IMG/VR virus record: IMGVR_UViG_3300017786_003484
Location: 180,433 to 244,432 of that record
Direction: 5' to 3' (one strand)
Length of the DNA: 64,000 bases
Position 1 is the first letter of the stretch; every line of letters begins with the position of its first letter. Shown in pieces: positions 46,130-58,029 of the stretch. The notes under the pieces were generated by a model that saw nothing but the letters and a program-made list of their open reading frames with translations, ran no database searches and was not told the DNA's origin. A program made the translations under genes and the position numbers.

Positions 46130-47458
46130 ATGACGTATTTAATGAAACAAATTCCTCAGACAGCCGAGGAAGCACAAAAGAAATGGATATTCCCTAAATT
46201 ACACTGGTACACTCCAATCGTTAGGAACGAATTTGTTCCTATATGTCAAGGTAGACCTTTTGATCGTACAGAAACAGTTGACTTAGGTTGGAAACAAAAA
46301 ATATTATCTCCTATCCCAGAGTTTGAATATACATCAAAGAGCTTTACAGAAGTTTGTGCCGATAGAGCCGTTGAGATTGCTAATATGGCCAAAGAGCAGG
46401 GAAAGAAAGTTATTGTTACATGCTCCGGCGGAATGGATAGCACTTCTGTTATAGCGGCCTTTTTGATGTATACAGACATTGATATTGAATTAACATACTC
46501 TGAATCAGCAATTCTTGAATGGCCAGAGTTCCATACCTATTGTACTAGCCAGCCTAGGATTACTAGACTAATTGATTTTACATACATGCCTTTTTTAATG
46601 GAAAAATTAATTGAGGCAGGCAACTATATTATTGTAGGAGGAGATCCAGGAGACTTGATATTTGGCTCTAAGATGTATAGAGAAGATCAAAAAATATGGC
46701 AACCAGATGGATCTGAAATAGTATACAATATGGATCACTGGGCACCTGTTTGGGAAGGAGTTCCTTCTCATCATAGAGACTTCTTACAACCTATAGTAGA
46801 TGCATGTCCAGTAGACTTAGAAAACAATTATGATTTAACTTGGTGGCTTGGATTTTGTATGAAGTTTCAACTTACAGAAACTAGATTATGGATGTGTAGT
46901 AGAAAGATGGCTCCGGTTATTAACTTCTTTTCCTCAGCCGGATGTCAGCAATGGTCTATGTCAAATAGCTATGCTGTGAAATGTCCTAATAATAATTGGG
47001 ACGACTTAAAACACGAAGCAAAGAAACATTTACATCTATGGTTCCCAGATGATAGTGTTTGGCAACAAGTAAAAAGAGATAGCCTTGGCGGTGTATGGAC
47101 TGAACCACTTAATAGAGTGTTCTATGCATGGATAAGAGATTTACATGAAGCTAAGATAGATGCTATCGATTCCTATCTAGTTAATAACATTCCTGAACTA
47201 AGAGAAAAGAATTACTCATTTAAACAAGATAGATTAGATATACTTGATGGATATGATCATGGTAGAAAAATGCTTGGTATTGGTCCTACTCCTGATCCAG
47301 ATTTTGATGTACCTGAAGGAGCAGATACAACCAAACGCATTAGAGGACAGATGTATCCGGTATCTACTATTGATGAGGACTTTAATTTTGTTAACTGGCC
47401 TAGACATAAGATTGCTACTCGTGTTTGGCAAAAACATGAACTCAATGAGTTTGCATAA
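46130..47458 (+). CDS. asparagine-synthetase-like PP-loop protein (paralog of 16532)
   Basis: CSGGMDST, GGDPGDLIFG, DLTWW, FF. Confidence 0.75.
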   Translation: MTYLMKQIPQTAEEAQKKWIFPKLHWYTPIVRNEFVPICQGRPFDRTETVDLGWKQKILSPIPEFEYTSKSFTEVCADRAVEIANMAKEQGKKVIVTCSGGMDSTSVIAAFLMYTDIDIELTYSESAILEWPEFHTYCTSQPRITRLIDFTYMPFLMEKLIEAGNYIIVGGDPGDLIFGSKMYREDQKIWQPDGSEIVYNMDHWAPVWEGVPSHHRDFLQPIVDACPVDLENNYDLTWWLGFCMKFQLTETRLWMCSRKMAPVINFFSSAGCQQWSMSNSYAVKCPNNNWDDLKHEAKKHLHLWFPDDSVWQQVKRDSLGGVWTEPLNRVFYAWIRDLHEAKIDAIDSYLVNNIPELREKNYSFKQDRLDILDGYDHGRKMLGIGPTPDPDFDVPEGADTTKRIRGQMYPVSTIDEDFNFVNWPRHKIATRVWQKHELNEFA

Positions 47459-48204: not shown

Positions 48205-48585
48205 TTAATCTGCGGCAGTTAATTTTTCCATATCTTTGTCTTCAACTTCAAATGTTTCAAACTTGTCGTTAACAATCATCTGTTGACCAGATATTTTTGA
48301 GCCTGCATTTCTAAAATTAAGAATAACTGGATCTGATTCAAATTCATCATAATCTGCTTTTGAATAGAATGTCATTGATGTTCTAATTTTTTTGATTGCT
48401 CCTGTTTCATCAACTTCAGAATCATTGTTAAAGCCAATAATTCTTTTAGTTTCTATGTATTTGCTGAAAACATAATCTTTATATTCTTGGTTGTCTTTGA
48501 GATGCATTGCACCGTCAAAACCGCCTGAAATTTTGCCACCTTTTGGGTCTGCAACTTCTCTTTCAATTCTAAAACGTTCTTCCAT
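48205..48585 (-). CDS. small protein, divergent RxAYNxE-family-like member
   Basis: YIETK.I..T.M.F.SKADYDEF.SDP resembles 15441; own TAAGTA promoter and TAAGGAG SD. Confidence 0.65.
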   Translation of the reverse strand: MEERFRIEREVADPKGGKISGGFDGAMHLKDNQEYKDYVFSKYIETKRIIGFNNDSEVDETGAIKKIRTSMTFYSKADYDEFESDPVILNFRNAGSKISGQQMIVNDKFETFEVEDKDMEKLTAAD

Positions 48586-48852
48586 TTAATAAGTCTCCTT
48601 AAGTAACTAATTTCTTAATACAGAAAATACCGGCCGGTATTACTATTTTAAGATTATTAAATATATTAGGGTTGGATATCCCTTACTTGCAAGTGTACGA
48701 CATCATTGCCGTTAACCCTAGTAACATATACTTATCCTAAACTGTAAAATATAATGTAAAATGGCTCAGTCATGCTAAAACAGCAATTCAGCCTTTACAC
48801 TTCGTACGGCTCAAAAGGGCTATCTATTTAATTGATTGTCATATATACAACT

Positions 48853-49030
48853 GTTAAAGACAAAGCGACCTCAGCTTTTAAAAAATGAGTGGCACCAGGA
48901 AAGACTGGAGCTCATCAAGGCTTTACAAAGTGATTGACGCCATGCAAAGACATGGGGTATTGCTATTCCTCAAGCATATAAATTAAGTCGTAGGTATTTT
49001 AGCAGACCGATTGCTCTGACTAATCCTATG
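48853..49030 (+). ncRNA. candidate structured RNA / 5' leader
   Basis: ORF-free; twin hairpins CCAG-GAAAGA-CTGG and CCATG-CAAAGA-CATGG plus further stems. Confidence 0.5.
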
Positions 49031-49052
49031 AACAGGAAGACGAGATAATTTT

Positions 49053-49232
49053 ATGTTACAAACATTATTTAAAACCTTGCATGAGAATATTTTTACAAAC
49101 AAAAATCACTCTATGCAAGGACAGGAAGAACTAATAAAATACTGCCGTGCAGAATACGGTAAAGAATGGAGATTTGCTTATGCTGAAATTTCCGATCATC
49201 AGAACAAAGACATAGGGAGAGTAATTAAATGA
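49053..49232 (+). CDS. 59 aa protein (not in ORF track)
   Basis: ..ELIKYCRAEYGKEWRFAY..; ATGA overlap with next gene. Confidence 0.65.
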   Translation: MLQTLFKTLHENIFTNKNHSMQGQEELIKYCRAEYGKEWRFAYAEISDHQNKDIGRVIK

Positions 49233-49447
49233 GTACAATGATTATGAAAAGTACTAACTTTGCATGTGATATATGTGAAAAGACTTGGAAAATAGTTAGG
49301 ATTGTTTACAGATCAGTAGCAGATGTAACAGTCAGCATGGGTTATGCAAGAGCTGCCAGTGTATTAGCACAACAAGGTTTGCACGACGAAGCAAAATATC
49401 TTATGTTAGGTGCAAAATATCATAGAGAAAACGCAAAGGAAGAATAG
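49229..49447 (+). CDS. small hypothetical protein
   Basis: GGGAG SD; GYARAAS.LA.QG...EAK.LM. Confidence 0.7.
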   Translation: MSTMIMKSTNFACDICEKTWKIVRIVYRSVADVTVSMGYARAASVLAQQGLHDEAKYLMLGAKYHRENAKEE

Positions 49448-49561
49448 ATGTTGAATATGTTTAAAAGATTTATTACAAGAGCTGTAGAAGCAAAACAAAA
49501 ATCAGTTAATAGAGAAATTGAGAAGTTTTACCTAGACAAAAGGCACAGGTACATCAAATAA
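49448..49561 (+). CDS. 37 aa basic peptide (not in ORF track)
   Basis: MLNMFKRFITRAVEAKQKSVNREIEKFYLDKRHRYIK; AAGGA SD. Confidence 0.55.
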   Translation: MLNMFKRFITRAVEAKQKSVNREIEKFYLDKRHRYIK

Positions 49562-49577
49562 TTAACTAAATAAGAGT

Positions 49578-51215
49578 ATGAAGATTACTGAACTTGATAC
49601 TCTAAAAGAAGCCGGTGGTTATGTTGCCCGAAATGCAAAAGAGGCCGCTGATCCAAGATTCTCAATGAGTATTGGAGGCGATGTAACCACCCATACTATG
49701 CGAGATATGATAGCAGACTTCTATCCTGTTAAGCCTCAAAAGGGTGATAAACAATCAGTCGTTAAAGAATCTAAAGTAGAGATGTGCTCAGACGCCTGTT
49801 GCGGACAACCTGTAACAGAATGTACTTGCGGTTCAGACTGCAAACATTGTGATTGTTATGAAAAAAACAACAAAGTAAATGCGAATCGTAACTACGGTAT
49901 GAGAAAAGCATCTGGACAAGGAGATAACCCAATGGTAGCAGAAAAAAGACCTGATCATGAAGTTGAAATGGCAAAAGCAGACGTACACAAACTTGCTGAA
50001 TATTCAGCTAAATTATCTAACTTGATTGATAATGTCAGCGAAGAAGAGGGTTTGCCTGGATGGATTCAAAAGAAAATTACATTAGCATCAGATTATATTG
50101 GTAGTGTTTATCATAAGTTAGATCATGAGATGGGTTCACCAATAACAGAATCAGACAAGCCTGGTTTTGATATGATTAATAAAATATTTGATAGCTTAAC
50201 TGATGAGGAAAAGGTTGATATACAGAGACAATTAACTGTAAAGGTTAGAGGCATTAGTGTTCCTCCAATTAATCCTGGACCATTTAAATTCAAACAAAGA
50301 AATCCTAATGATAAAGATATTGCTGACATGCCTTTATCACAATTACAGAACTTGTATAGTGATGTTAACGAAGGCGATAATAAAATGGGTCCTCAAGACA
50401 TTACACCAGGTGATCGTGTAGAATTTGAAGGTGAAAAGTTTGAAGTAGTGGATGTTGAACTTGATACGATTGTTGCTGATAATTTAGAAACAGGACTTAG
50501 GAATAGGCTTAAGACGGATAAAGTAACTAGAATATTTGGTGCGGATGCACAAACAGACCAAGATAAACAAGACATGGGAGATATGTTTAAGCGACTTGAT
50601 AAAGCAGGGTCTGGTTCATTAAAACATGTTGCAACAGAAGGCGACGGACGTAAGAAAGGTATCCACGGTAAAGGACACCCTATGAGAAAGAAACAACAGG
50701 CCGCAATACATGCAGGCGAATCAGCAAAAAAGCCTTTAAGTCGTTTCGCTACTGAAATTGGAATTCAAGAAATAGATTGCTGGGACGGTTACAAAAAAGA
50801 TGGAACTAAACCCGGCACAGGTAAGAATAAAGGAAAACGTGTTAATAATTGCGTTAAAGAAGAAGAAATTACTTTAAGCGAAGAGCAAAACTTTCATGAA
50901 GAGTTTGGCTACTTAGGATATGCTTTGGAAGAAGGTATGTTTGAAGCTGAATATCAAGGACGTAAAGTAAAACTTAATAAGCCAATGCGTGGTGATGTTA
51001 AGAAGTTTAAAGTATATGTTAAAGATCCAAAAACAGGTAATGTCAAGAAAGTTAACTTTGGTCATGGAGGCACTAGTGCTAAGAAAGCAGGACAAAAGAC
51101 TATGAAGATTAAAAAGTCTAATCCAGCAAGACGCAAGAGTTTTAGAGCTAGACACAACTGTGATAATCCAGGTCCAAAGACAAAAGCACGTTACTGGTCC
51201 TGTAGAGCCTGGTAA
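49578..51215 (+). CDS. modular protein with C-terminal DUF6321-like domain, probable internal head protein
   Basis: EAEYQGRKV.LNKP..KVNFG..RKSFRARH.C...KARYWSC; CW.GY..NCV module; DHEV.MA..W.Q.KIT.A.DY module. Confidence 0.65.
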   Translation: MKITELDTLKEAGGYVARNAKEAADPRFSMSIGGDVTTHTMRDMIADFYPVKPQKGDKQSVVKESKVEMCSDACCGQPVTECTCGSDCKHCDCYEKNNKVNANRNYGMRKASGQGDNPMVAEKRPDHEVEMAKADVHKLAEYSAKLSNLIDNVSEEEGLPGWIQKKITLASDYIGSVYHKLDHEMGSPITESDKPGFDMINKIFDSLTDEEKVDIQRQLTVKVRGISVPPINPGPFKFKQRNPNDKDIADMPLSQLQNLYSDVNEGDNKMGPQDITPGDRVEFEGEKFEVVDVELDTIVADNLETGLRNRLKTDKVTRIFGADAQTDQDKQDMGDMFKRLDKAGSGSLKHVATEGDGRKKGIHGKGHPMRKKQQAAIHAGESAKKPLSRFATEIGIQEIDCWDGYKKDGTKPGTGKNKGKRVNNCVKEEEITLSEEQNFHEEFGYLGYALEEGMFEAEYQGRKVKLNKPMRGDVKKFKVYVKDPKTGNVKKVNFGHGGTSAKKAGQKTMKIKKSNPARRKSFRARHNCDNPGPKTKARYWSCRAW

Positions 51216-57350: not shown

Positions 57351-57530
57351 ATGATACCTAAAGCACCAAATGTTAAATTTGAAGTCTTCTTAGTTAATTT
57401 TGGCTATGTATGCGGAGCAACTGATACCTTAGAGAAAGCTATCAAGCTGGCTAAGAAAACAGGTTTTCAGTGTAACATTTTCAAATCAAATGATCCATTT
57501 ACTCCGATTAAATGGGTTTCTCCTGTATGA
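57351..57530 (+). CDS. 59 aa protein (not in ORF track)
   Basis: MIPKAPNVKFEVFLVNFGY...; GGGGAG SD. Confidence 0.65.
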   Translation: MIPKAPNVKFEVFLVNFGYVCGATDTLEKAIKLAKKTGFQCNIFKSNDPFTPIKWVSPV

Positions 57531-57628
57531 AGCTCTATCCGTTGAAAGATATTTGTTTGGCTACAGTAATTGTTATTGTAGTCGTATTTGGTCAAGACAT
57601 CATCACCTACTTAGGGAGATTTGTATGA
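57527..57628 (+). CDS. 33 aa membrane peptide (not in ORF track)
   Basis: ATGA overlaps at both ends. Confidence 0.5.
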   Translation: MKLYPLKDICLATVIVIVVVFGQDIITYLGRFV

Positions 57629-58029
57629 CAATGCATTTAGTTGGTCCTTATATGACCACAACAGTTTATAGTCGTAAGAAAAGTAAGCCTAAGAAGAAAA
57701 CACAGGCTCAACTTCAGTCTGAGGCTAAACACGAAAAGTATCTGCGAAAGATGGGTGTTCATCCTGATCAAAGGAAAGAAGTACAAAATAAGTTTAATAA
57801 AGGGGATAAGTGTTACGGTAGCACGGCTGGCTCCAACCCAGTAAGAGAGGGTTCAATTCCTTCATCCTCTGCCAATTCTTTGTTCTATGATAAAAGTATG
57901 GCTAAGCCTGCACCTAAAGTTTATACAGGTACAGAGATTGTTGGAATTGCTGTCATGCATAAATCTAATGCCGTTCCTATTAGAGGAAAGAAACAAGCTG
58001 AAGAAATAGCTAGAATGCGGAGAGGCTAA
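57625..58029 (+). CDS. conserved basic phage protein containing a nested tRNA
   Basis: MTMHLVGPY.TT..HEK.L..MGVHPDQ N-part and YTG....GIA.MHKSNAVP....A.EIA.MRRG C-part; GGGAG SD before ATG 57625. Confidence 0.8.
   Translation: MTMHLVGPYMTTTVYSRKKSKPKKKTQAQLQSEAKHEKYLRKMGVHPDQRKEVQNKFNKGDKCYGSTAGSNPVREGSIPSSSANSLFYDKSMAKPAPKVYTGTEIVGIAVMHKSNAVPIRGKKQAEEIARMRRG
57801..57874 (+). tRNA. tRNA-Trp(CCA), nested in CDS 57625-58029
   Basis: AGGGGAT/ATCCTCT acceptor, GTGT/GCAC D-stem, GCTGG-CTCCAAC-CCAGT, GAGGG-TTCAATT-CCTTC, G73 plus CCA; atypical A8/U14. Confidence 0.85.

Follow-up and report, generated by a model that had tools for sequence, protein, structure and literature searches.

Introduction

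Tandem RNA hairpins bearing a conserved loop are known from the cuckoo or CcsR RNAs (Rfam ar14) of Alphaproteobacteria, which carry CCUCCUCCC loops, occur in variable copy number, and lie in the 3′ or 5′ UTR of a DUF1127 gene (the CIN1 context), the latter arrangement being found in S. meliloti (PMC8034643). CcsR RNAs are cut from the UTR of the DUF1127 gene in a maturation that depends on RNase E, and the DUF1127 protein CcaF1 of Rhodobacter sphaeroides has been shown to bind RNA (PMC8034643). Other described systems provide partial precedents. In phage translational operators (the T4 RegA, gp32 and gp43 leaders) and in lambda nut boxB, which is bound by N protein, a small hairpin with a purine-rich loop in a 5′ leader is recognised by a small, basic phage protein to control expression of the downstream genes; these are single sites with known binders. 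CsrB/RsmZ-type RNAs and TRAP/HutP-type leaders present multiple repeated protein-binding motifs in hairpin loops or at regular spacing, whereas type III toxin–antitoxin RNAs (ToxI/ToxN) comprise near-identical 36-nt repeats, processed by a ToxN-family endoribonuclease of about 170 aa, directly upstream of protein genes in phage-related DNA.

Here we examine a locus with a comparable layout in the virus record IMGVR_UViG_3300017786_003484. An initial annotation made from sequence alone had described two hairpins with matching AAAGA loops on different stems, in about 180 ORF-free nt ahead of three coupled ORFs of 59, 72 and 37 aa, and had proposed a repeated protein-binding RNA element with cognate microproteins, forming an autoregulatory or sRNA-plus-small-protein module. 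We find that the two hairpins are real and belong to an apparently uncatalogued, widely conserved structured RNA leader that heads an operon of very small proteins in uncultured T4-like marine jumbo phages. We infer, tentatively, that it is a protein-binding control element for that operon.

Results

Genomic context and the twin hairpins

The window (the whole stretch of DNA analysed, 64,000 nt) is the end of a 244,432-base record, which is AT-rich (35.6% G+C) and was rated 74% complete by CheckV. The record encodes a T4-type Gp23 major capsid protein (PF07068, E 6e-98, 325 bits), a ClpB-like ATPase, a collagen-like tail fibre, radical-SAM proteins and four tRNAs. Other contigs carrying the same RNA are 98–237 kb at 27–67% completeness, and the carriers therefore appear to be uncultured T4-like marine jumbo phages of roughly 330–360 kb.

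Both hairpins were confirmed by direct reading of the plus strand, on which all features below lie: hairpin H1 is CCAG[GAAAGA]CUGG at 48895–48908, and hairpin H2 is CCAUG[CAAAGA]CAUGG at 48940–48955. They are followed by ORF1 (49053–49232, 59 aa), ORF2 (49229–49447, 72 aa, overlapping ORF1 by ATGA) and ORF3 (49448–49561, 37 aa, its start codon directly after the TAG stop of ORF2). Hairpins with a stem of four or more pairs and a [GC]AAAGA loop are not a genome-wide repeat, occurring only twice on the plus strand of the 244-kb record, both at this locus, and once on the minus strand. However, shuffled sequences give about eight on both strands together, such that the hairpin type alone is not beyond chance, and the single-sequence fold is unremarkable (z = –1.4). 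The case therefore rests on comparison with relatives, in which the loops are invariant while the stems covary.

The observation thus holds, with reservations about its details. The CTCA/TGAG stem of the initial annotation is not kept in relatives (loci recovered here are designated L plus a number), being AAAC with CACA in L008 and TGAG with CACA in L014. The GGGGTA/TATTCC stem shows only a wobble-compatible U/C change and overlaps better-supported pairings. The TAGG/CCTA stem, more exactly CGUAGG (48989–48994) with CCUAUG (49025–49030), holds through G–U/G–C changes within the near relatives of the window, but the whole 3′ hairpin to which it belongs is lineage-specific. The description of the region as ORF-free is also loose, since mechanical ORFs of 33 aa exist at 48836–48937 and 48885–48986, although their start codons are not conserved.

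Conservation in close relatives

Exact-protein look-ups for ORF2 and for the divergent neighbouring 126-aa gene yielded syntenic contigs of several lineages, in all of which the three small ORFs are present. Differences in these ORFs fall mostly at the third codon position (for example 5, 8 and 24 at positions 1, 2 and 3 for ORF1 against L008); they are real genes. By contrast, the non-coding core (48887–48977) is 95.6–100% identical, whereas the ORFs and the 126-aa gene are 68–80% identical in the same lineages, and the 126-aa and ORF2 proteins are only 55–66% identical. The few variable sites are all wobble-compatible on the plus strand: CCAUG becomes CCGUG in L016, CCUAUG becomes CCUACG opposite CGUAGG, and UUGCU becomes CUGCU opposite AGCAG. 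Several alternative routes to relatives gave little: a pattern requiring both exact hairpins found nothing in viral contigs, protein-anchored scans with ORF1 and with the 126-aa protein returned none, and a metagenome scan with the 442-aa protein returned only near-identical loci.

Covariation in distant relatives

The well-conserved 442-aa PP-loop protein served as an anchor to recover lineages L029–L031 and L032, which keep the synteny but in which the stems differ while the loops stay. Specifically, H1 becomes CAGG/CUUG or CUGG/CCG-G, H2 becomes CUGG/CCGG, the hairpin between them becomes GGCAU/AUGCC, the 5′ hairpin becomes GAGC/GCUC, and an extra unit, UUGAC plus GGUCC[AAA]GGACC, is inserted. 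On the resulting alignment (A7), 5 of 12 pairs change on both sides, including 2 of the 4 pairs of H1; this is reached in 1 of 500 shuffles, and slid partners pair far worse. On a further alignment (A9), 98% of cells are paired and three pairs show double changes. Long-range helices proposed by RNAalifold from the close relatives (CAGUCAU with GUGAUUG, and AGCCUU with AAGGCU) were rejected, because they are broken in L029/L032, where local hairpins covary instead. A kissing interaction between the H1 loop and the loop of the downstream hairpin Hd was likewise considered and dropped, as the two loops show no consistent co-variation across lineages. The many G–U pairs (CCGUG/CAUGG in L016, CUGG/CCGG in L029, and those of helix Pc described below) would be A–C mismatches on the other strand, and thereby assign the RNA to the plus strand.

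A large RNA family

Patterns built from the invariant parts found further members in IMG/VR: first L037 and L040, then about a dozen more, and, with GGTATTGCT-N5-9-AAGCATCC, at least 120 stretches, which give 92 distinct sequences, 72 of them with the ORF1-family motif within 330 nt downstream. A model covering the last hairpin unit plus the invariant 3′ segment (R1) separates members of the first set (56–75 bits) from chance pattern hits inside coding regions (28.6 bits or less), the latter including L038, L039, L041, L052, L061 and about 30 others. R1 scores 73.4 bits at the window locus, the only copy in the 244-kb record, and matches 85 of 100 sources in the larger set. All 20 matches of R1 in the first set lie just upstream of the small genes of the operon, in the order ORF1 family then ORF2 family in all lineages read, with the ORF2 family first in L040. 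On the R1-derived alignment of 45 distinct sequences (A13), all five H2 pairs show double changes, with up to five pair types and 97% of cells paired, although this alignment is fitted to the model, which favours the structure. A census independent of the model counts 90 distinct leaders, from over 100 uncultured viral contigs, with 1–4 hairpins each; the loop counts are GAUAGA 39, GAAAGA 32, CAAAGA 30 and AAAAGA 27, and each loop type sits on 9–11 different inner stems (nine each for GAAAGA and GAUAGA, eleven for the CAAAGA loop of H2). The central argument of the initial annotation, that the same loop on different stems indicates selection on RNA structure, is thus borne out on a large scale.

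Architecture of the leader

At the 5′ side, a T4-late-promoter-like box, TATATACA, lies at 48842–48849, and relatives have TATAAATA, CATAAATA or GATAAATA at the same place. A late-like box was found 41–87 nt before the H1 loop in all 18 leaders checked, exactly TATAAATA in nine of them and one- or two-base variants in the rest, and two relatives (L056 and L079) also have a sigma-70-like TTGACA-17-TATATT promoter further downstream; function as a promoter is inferred. An optional 5′ hairpin follows (Hc, 48862–48878, AAAGC[GACCUCA]GCUUU), which becomes GAGC..GCUC in L029 and L037 (A–U to G–C), is deleted in the L008/L017 lineages, and is replaced by another hairpin in L040. H1, preceded by (G)ACAC, carries a GAAAGA or GAUAGA loop in relatives. 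It is followed by a variable hairpin (Hm, 48909–48922, AGCU[CAUCAA]GGCU), which becomes GGCAU/AUGCC, GGCG/CGCC, CCGC/GCGG, GGAGU/ACUCC or CGGAU/AUCCG in relatives, and then by a conserved linker, UUACAAAGUGAUUGACG (48923–48939; UUACAAG.GAUUGAC across the family). One to three units follow, each a UGAC(G) 5′ flank plus a hairpin, H2 being such a unit here.

The invariant GGUAUUGCU and hairpin Hd, UGCU[AUUCCUCA]AGCA, occupy 48956–48977, the pyrimidine-rich loop being complementary to Shine-Dalgarno-like AGGA(A/G); across the family this segment reads GGUAUUGCU..UUCCUC..AAGCA or GGUAUUGCU..UUCCUC..AAGCAUCC, after which come a Shine-Dalgarno site and the first small gene. The six-mer AGUGAU of the linker (48929–48934) can pair with the invariant AUUGCU (48959–48964) as helix Pc. 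This six-mer varies as AGUGAU, AGUAGU, AGCGAU and AGCAGU (6 of 6 pairs) and as CGCAAU and AGUAGA (5 of 6), that is, only between bases that keep pairing (Y opposite G and R opposite U). It gives 5–6 of 6 pairs in 16 of 18 loci, with shifted registers giving 0–4, whereas L037 and L040 are exceptions with only 3 of 6. Pc overlaps Hd, such that the two are mutually exclusive, and RNAfold chooses one or the other depending on lineage. The Hd stem never varies, and hence covariation neither supports nor contradicts it; in the pattern-derived set its bases were fixed by the search, but in lineages found through neighbouring proteins, independently of the RNA, they are invariant without that bias.

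A lineage-specific 3′ hairpin (48989–49030) comprises the outer CGUAGG/CCUAUG and an inner AGCAG[ACCGA]UUGCU (49001–49015). Only wobble-compatible changes occur within the near relatives of the window; a different hairpin occupies this place in L029/L032, and it is absent in most members, including L037, L040, L042, L043 and L059.

Expression

Twenty runs from 15 studies hold the region, 12 of which are on record as RNA libraries. Metatranscriptome contigs from RNA libraries of four studies start at 48864, 48864, 48865 and 48853 and continue into the ORFs, one spanning 48864–50971, so that this is a 5′ leader of about 190 nt. No contig covers 48712–48852, and the upstream genes are hardly covered, which argues against DNA carry-over. 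The contig of the divergent 126-aa gene ends at 48711 followed by Illumina adapter, which suggests the 5′ end of that transcript. Because these are assemblies, they give no strand, true ends or levels, and the 5′ end at 48853–48865 is approximate; the strand assignment comes from the G–U pairs.

The microproteins

ORF1–3 match no Pfam, PHROG or PADLOC family. ORF1 belongs to a family with the core L..[WY][AC][KR][TA]E[YF]G.[DE]W.[FY]AY and is present in every lineage. ORF2, with a CxxC near the N terminus and G[YRT]ARAA..L...G.H.EAK.LM, is conserved in all lineages and belongs to a viral family that reaches T4-like phages, such as Melnitz (gp45). ORF3 is very basic (pI 10.4) and is conserved in the relatives of the window and in L029, weakly in L032, but was not found in the wider family, where DUF1127, DUF3563 or other microproteins follow instead. 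AlphaFold models of ORF2 (a predicted helical hairpin, pLDDT 72.7) and ORF1 (predicted helices, pLDDT 62.8), together with a Foldseek search of the PDB, gave nothing informative, and a complex prediction for ORF1 with ORF2 gave no verdict and is not used as evidence either way. An Atlas search placed ORF2 among unnamed viral clusters at 0.88, which is only a lead, and found nothing for ORF1.

The suggestion in the initial annotation of DUF1127-like proteins is half right. None of ORF1–3 matches DUF1127 (PF06568; cut-off 23.3 bits, motif L..LSD.EL.DIG..R.DI) at E up to 0.1. A reading of ORF1 as a degenerate DUF1127 was rejected, since its tail, ISDHQNKDIG, resembles the motif only weakly (BLASTP E 0.08) and is not kept in L029/L032. 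ORF2 shares only its N-terminal CxxC module with phage DUF1127 proteins (hhalign 91% over 25 columns). However, in RNA-bearing relatives the operon is ORF1 family, then ORF2 family, then usually a DUF1127 protein (38–45 bits), sometimes a DUF3563 protein (27–38 bits), and other microproteins; PF06568 proteins occur in the operons of L043, L044, L056, L071, L076, L042, L050 and L040, whereas the 244-kb record, at 74% completeness, has no PF06568 match. In T4-like phages, a DUF1127 protein lies beside the ORF2 homologue, before it in L002/L003 and after it in Melnitz (gp45/gp46), but those loci lack the RNA; Melnitz has the ORF1-like/ORF2-like/DUF1127 operon with a TATAAATA box but no such hairpins.

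Searches for described counterparts

At gathering thresholds, Rfam 15 models matched only four tRNAs in the window, and for 48500–49700 at E up to 10 the best hit was 20 bits against a threshold of 40, to unrelated families; L059 and nine further loci also gave no match. Among 50,697 cultured phage records there was no DNA match even at E up to 1, and nothing was found by pattern in one genome each of 185,579 prokaryote species, or in a full-text literature library searched with the core sequence. Thus, of the two outcomes set beforehand as refuting the initial reading, a match to an Rfam motif of known function and loss of the loops in homologues, neither was observed. PADLOC models gave no hit on ORF1–3 or the neighbours, ToxN-like or otherwise, apart from a 14-bit chance match.

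Discussion

We consider it very likely that this is a genuine structured RNA under selection that forms the 5′ leader (48853/48864–49052) of an mRNA continuing into ORF1, ORF2, ORF3 and a 545-aa gene. The structure of the RNA, its conservation, its expression and its fixed position before these genes are shown, whereas protein binding, the identity of the binder, autoregulation, and the proposed switch and its direction are inferred. The interpretation in the initial annotation is therefore partly supported: selection on structure, repetition of the element, and its constant association with conserved small-protein genes are borne out, while the roles of the microproteins as binders and autoregulators remain inference, and the RNA is a leader continuous with the mRNA in metatranscriptome contigs, not a demonstrated separate sRNA.

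The explanation that we favour, albeit tentatively, is a protein-binding control leader. The family is modular, with an H1 loop of G-A-N-A-G-A, an A-rich linker ending in UUGAC, further units usually with N-AAAGA loops, and an invariant segment 10–70 nt before the Shine-Dalgarno site of an ORF1- or ORF2-family gene. In this view, the repeated hairpins, with identical loops and flanks and a variable copy number that fits protein docking better than a ligand pocket, would be docking sites for a small, probably oligomeric RNA-binding protein. The best candidates come from the same operon: ORF1 and ORF2, which are always present, the basic ORF3 here, and DUF1127 proteins in relatives, a domain for which RNA binding has been shown in CcaF1 (PMC8034643). 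Binding would decide whether the invariant AUUGCU pairs upstream as Pc, closing the hairpin array, or downstream as Hd, and this choice would set how far the UUCCUC stretch can mask the Shine-Dalgarno site, giving translational feedback. Several observations weigh against this proposal: direct evidence of protein binding is lacking, the ORF1 and ORF2 models are plain helices without an informative fold match, no DUF1127 gene occurs in the 244 kb of this phage, the Hd stem and the UUCCUC loop never vary, so that this half of the switch has no covariation support, Pc fails in L037 and L040, and the Shine-Dalgarno region of L008 lacks a GGA to pair with UUCCU.

Of the alternatives, the best surviving, although doubtful, is that the leader is the precursor of one or more trans-acting small RNAs, whose conserved loops or UUCCUC loop would pair with host or phage mRNAs, with the microproteins aiding maturation or stability. 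The layout matches that of cuckoo/DUF1127 loci, the pyrimidine-rich loop is complementary to Shine-Dalgarno-like sequences, and in one run (X8) a separate 179-nt contig covers just 48865–49043. However, in two others (X1 and X2) the contigs run unbroken from the leader into the ORFs at the same depth, no terminator follows the hairpins, and the first and third loop positions vary (G/C/A and A/U), which fits protein contacts better than one fixed base-pairing target. It is also unlikely, though not excluded, that the hairpin array and the always-linked microproteins (ORF1 and ORF2, with DUF1127 or DUF3563 in relatives) form a phage ribonucleoprotein acting in trans on the host, for example as a decoy or guide that retargets host RNA turnover or translation during late infection by a globally distributed clade of about 350-kb marine phages; this would be a new kind of phage RNA–protein takeover module, and not merely a cis leader.

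Less likely still, the hairpins may mainly stabilise the mRNA or direct its processing without a dedicated binding protein, for example as 5′ stem-loops that block RNase E or as defined cleavage sites at the UGAC linkers. The hairpins do sit at the extreme 5′ end of the transcript, the UGAC linkers resemble single-stranded sites next to stem-loops, and CcsR maturation offers an RNase E precedent (PMC8034643), but simple protective hairpins do not need invariant loops and flanks across about 90 divergent leaders. Similarly unlikely is a riboswitch, or another ligand- or temperature-sensing leader, controlling translation through the Pc/Hd alternative: unpaired nucleotides are very highly conserved, and two mutually exclusive pairings of an invariant segment lie next to the ribosome-binding region, yet the number of hairpin units varies from 1 to 4 and whole hairpins come and go between lineages, unlike a fixed ligand pocket, the downstream microproteins have no metabolic link, and no Rfam riboswitch matched. 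Finally, action at the DNA level (TTGAC as a –35 box, with TTGACG 18 nt before TATTGC and a TTGACA at similar spacing in L029, or the palindromes as repressor sites) or a hidden peptide (the 33-aa ORF at 48885–48986) is very unlikely, because the half-sites change freely while the centre is kept and pairing is often through G–U, both of which point to RNA rather than DNA, the region is inside the transcript, the ATG of that ORF is missing in the L008, L017 and L037 lineages, and the core differs from these relatives at only 3–4 of 91 positions, unlike the third-position-rich divergence of the real ORFs beside it.

What is new here is a large RNA family with strong covariation support, absent from the databases and literature searched, that occurs in over 100 uncultured viral contigs, appears to belong to T4-like marine jumbo phages of about 350 kb, and is transcribed in ocean metatranscriptomes from many studies; its general kind is familiar. 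It links a repeated RNA hairpin to a fixed set of microproteins, including DUF1127 and DUF3563, two widespread bacterial domains whose functions are still poorly understood, and thereby makes the question of what these small proteins bind directly testable with short synthetic RNAs and peptides.

In comparison with described systems, the locus shares with ToxI/ToxN a tandem RNA array directly upstream of protein genes, but its units are about 20 nt, differ in their stems, and have no ToxN-like or other defence-family match nearby. It shares with CsrB/RsmZ-type RNAs and TRAP/HutP-type leaders repeated short motifs in variable number, suited to multimeric RNA-binding proteins, but there is no GGA, GAG or UAG repeat logic, the hairpins are cis to an operon of microproteins, and no CsrA- or TRAP-like gene is nearby. 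Like the T4 operators and boxB, it is a phage 5′ leader with small hairpins and purine-rich loops, but with 1–4 repeated units plus an invariant 3′ segment, a binder that is so far only inferred, and no sequence similarity. The closest analogue is the cuckoo/CcsR RNA, with which it shares tandem hairpins of conserved loop sequence and variable number in the UTR of a gene for a very small protein, DUF1127 proteins encoded in the same operon in many relatives, and one hairpin with a pyrimidine-rich loop complementary to Shine-Dalgarno-like sequences. It is not a member of that family: the loops are N-A-(A/U)-A-G-A and not CCUCCUCCC, only the last hairpin has a UUCCUC loop, no Rfam model matches, the operon of the window itself has no DUF1127 gene, release of separate sRNAs would be inference here, and the hosts are phages, not Alphaproteobacteria. 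The parallel between the two pairings, with no detectable sequence relationship between the RNAs, suggests that the combination of tandem hairpins with such microproteins is a recurring design.

Conserved non-coding sequence between the divergent transcripts

A second strongly conserved non-coding block (48766-48822) lies between the two divergent transcripts, and is not covered by any RNA contig. The block holds two small hairpins with compensatory changes. Specifically, UGCU[AAAAC]AGCA (48773-48785) becomes UGCG..UGCA in L029, a lineage that retains the synteny of the window, whereas GCUC[AAAA]GGGC (48809-48820) becomes GCUU[AUA]AGGC in the similarly syntenic lineage L032, and is followed by a U-rich run. 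The start of the block, CAGTCATGC-AAAAAC-GCA, recurs upstream of the leader in two further RNA-bearing relatives (L040 and L042). It is possible that the block represents either a small RNA lost from the libraries or a DNA control region. In addition, the conserved 5′ UTR of the divergent 126-aa gene (48586-48711) contains a perfect 16-base palindrome, AATACCGGCCGGTATT (48626-48641). An RNA contig ends at 48711 followed by Illumina adapter, which suggests that the minus-strand transcript starts at this position.

Variation among related operons and gene calls

Some related operons downstream of the leader encode DUF3563 (PF12086) proteins between the ORF1 and ORF2 homologues. Across the operons considered here (those of relatives L042, L050, L059, and L037), several unrelated microproteins, comprising members of the ORF1 family, DUF3563 proteins, and one DUF1127 protein, end in the same tail, N-L-(K/T)-G-W-V. 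One close relative (L004) differs from the window in having a homing-endonuclease-like gene (NUMOD3 / I-HmuI-like; L004 4763-5383) inserted after the large gene downstream of the operon. In another close relative, L016, a public gene call (1050-1367) fuses ORF2 and ORF3 into a 105-aa product by reading TAG as Q; however, the two-ORF layout is conserved in all lineages, so this appears to be a gene-calling artefact rather than evidence of another genetic code. Elsewhere in the window, the tRNA-Trp gene (57801-57874) lies inside a mechanical 179-aa ORF (57490-58029), and one of the two is probably not real.

Genomic context and relationship to known phages

The RNA-bearing contigs of 98-237 kb are rated 27-67% complete which, considering the whole record (G000) together with the contigs behind loci L125, L127, L152, and L157, implies a clade of uncultured T4-like marine phages with genomes of about 350 kb and no DNA match in the cultured phage collection. 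The best anchor for finding relatives was a 442-aa protein (46130-47458) with an SGGMDS PP-loop motif, which is about 80% identical across lineages but has no clear family assignment. Homologues of this protein also occur in T4-like contigs (L033-L036) next to RecA-like and DnaB-like genes. In the C-terminal part (50940-51215) of the 545-aa gene (49578-51215), the last 90 or so residues match phrog_7595. The DNA encoding these residues is 70-77% identical to genes of several Pelagibacter phages, which hints at a SAR11-type host or at gene exchange with pelagiphages.
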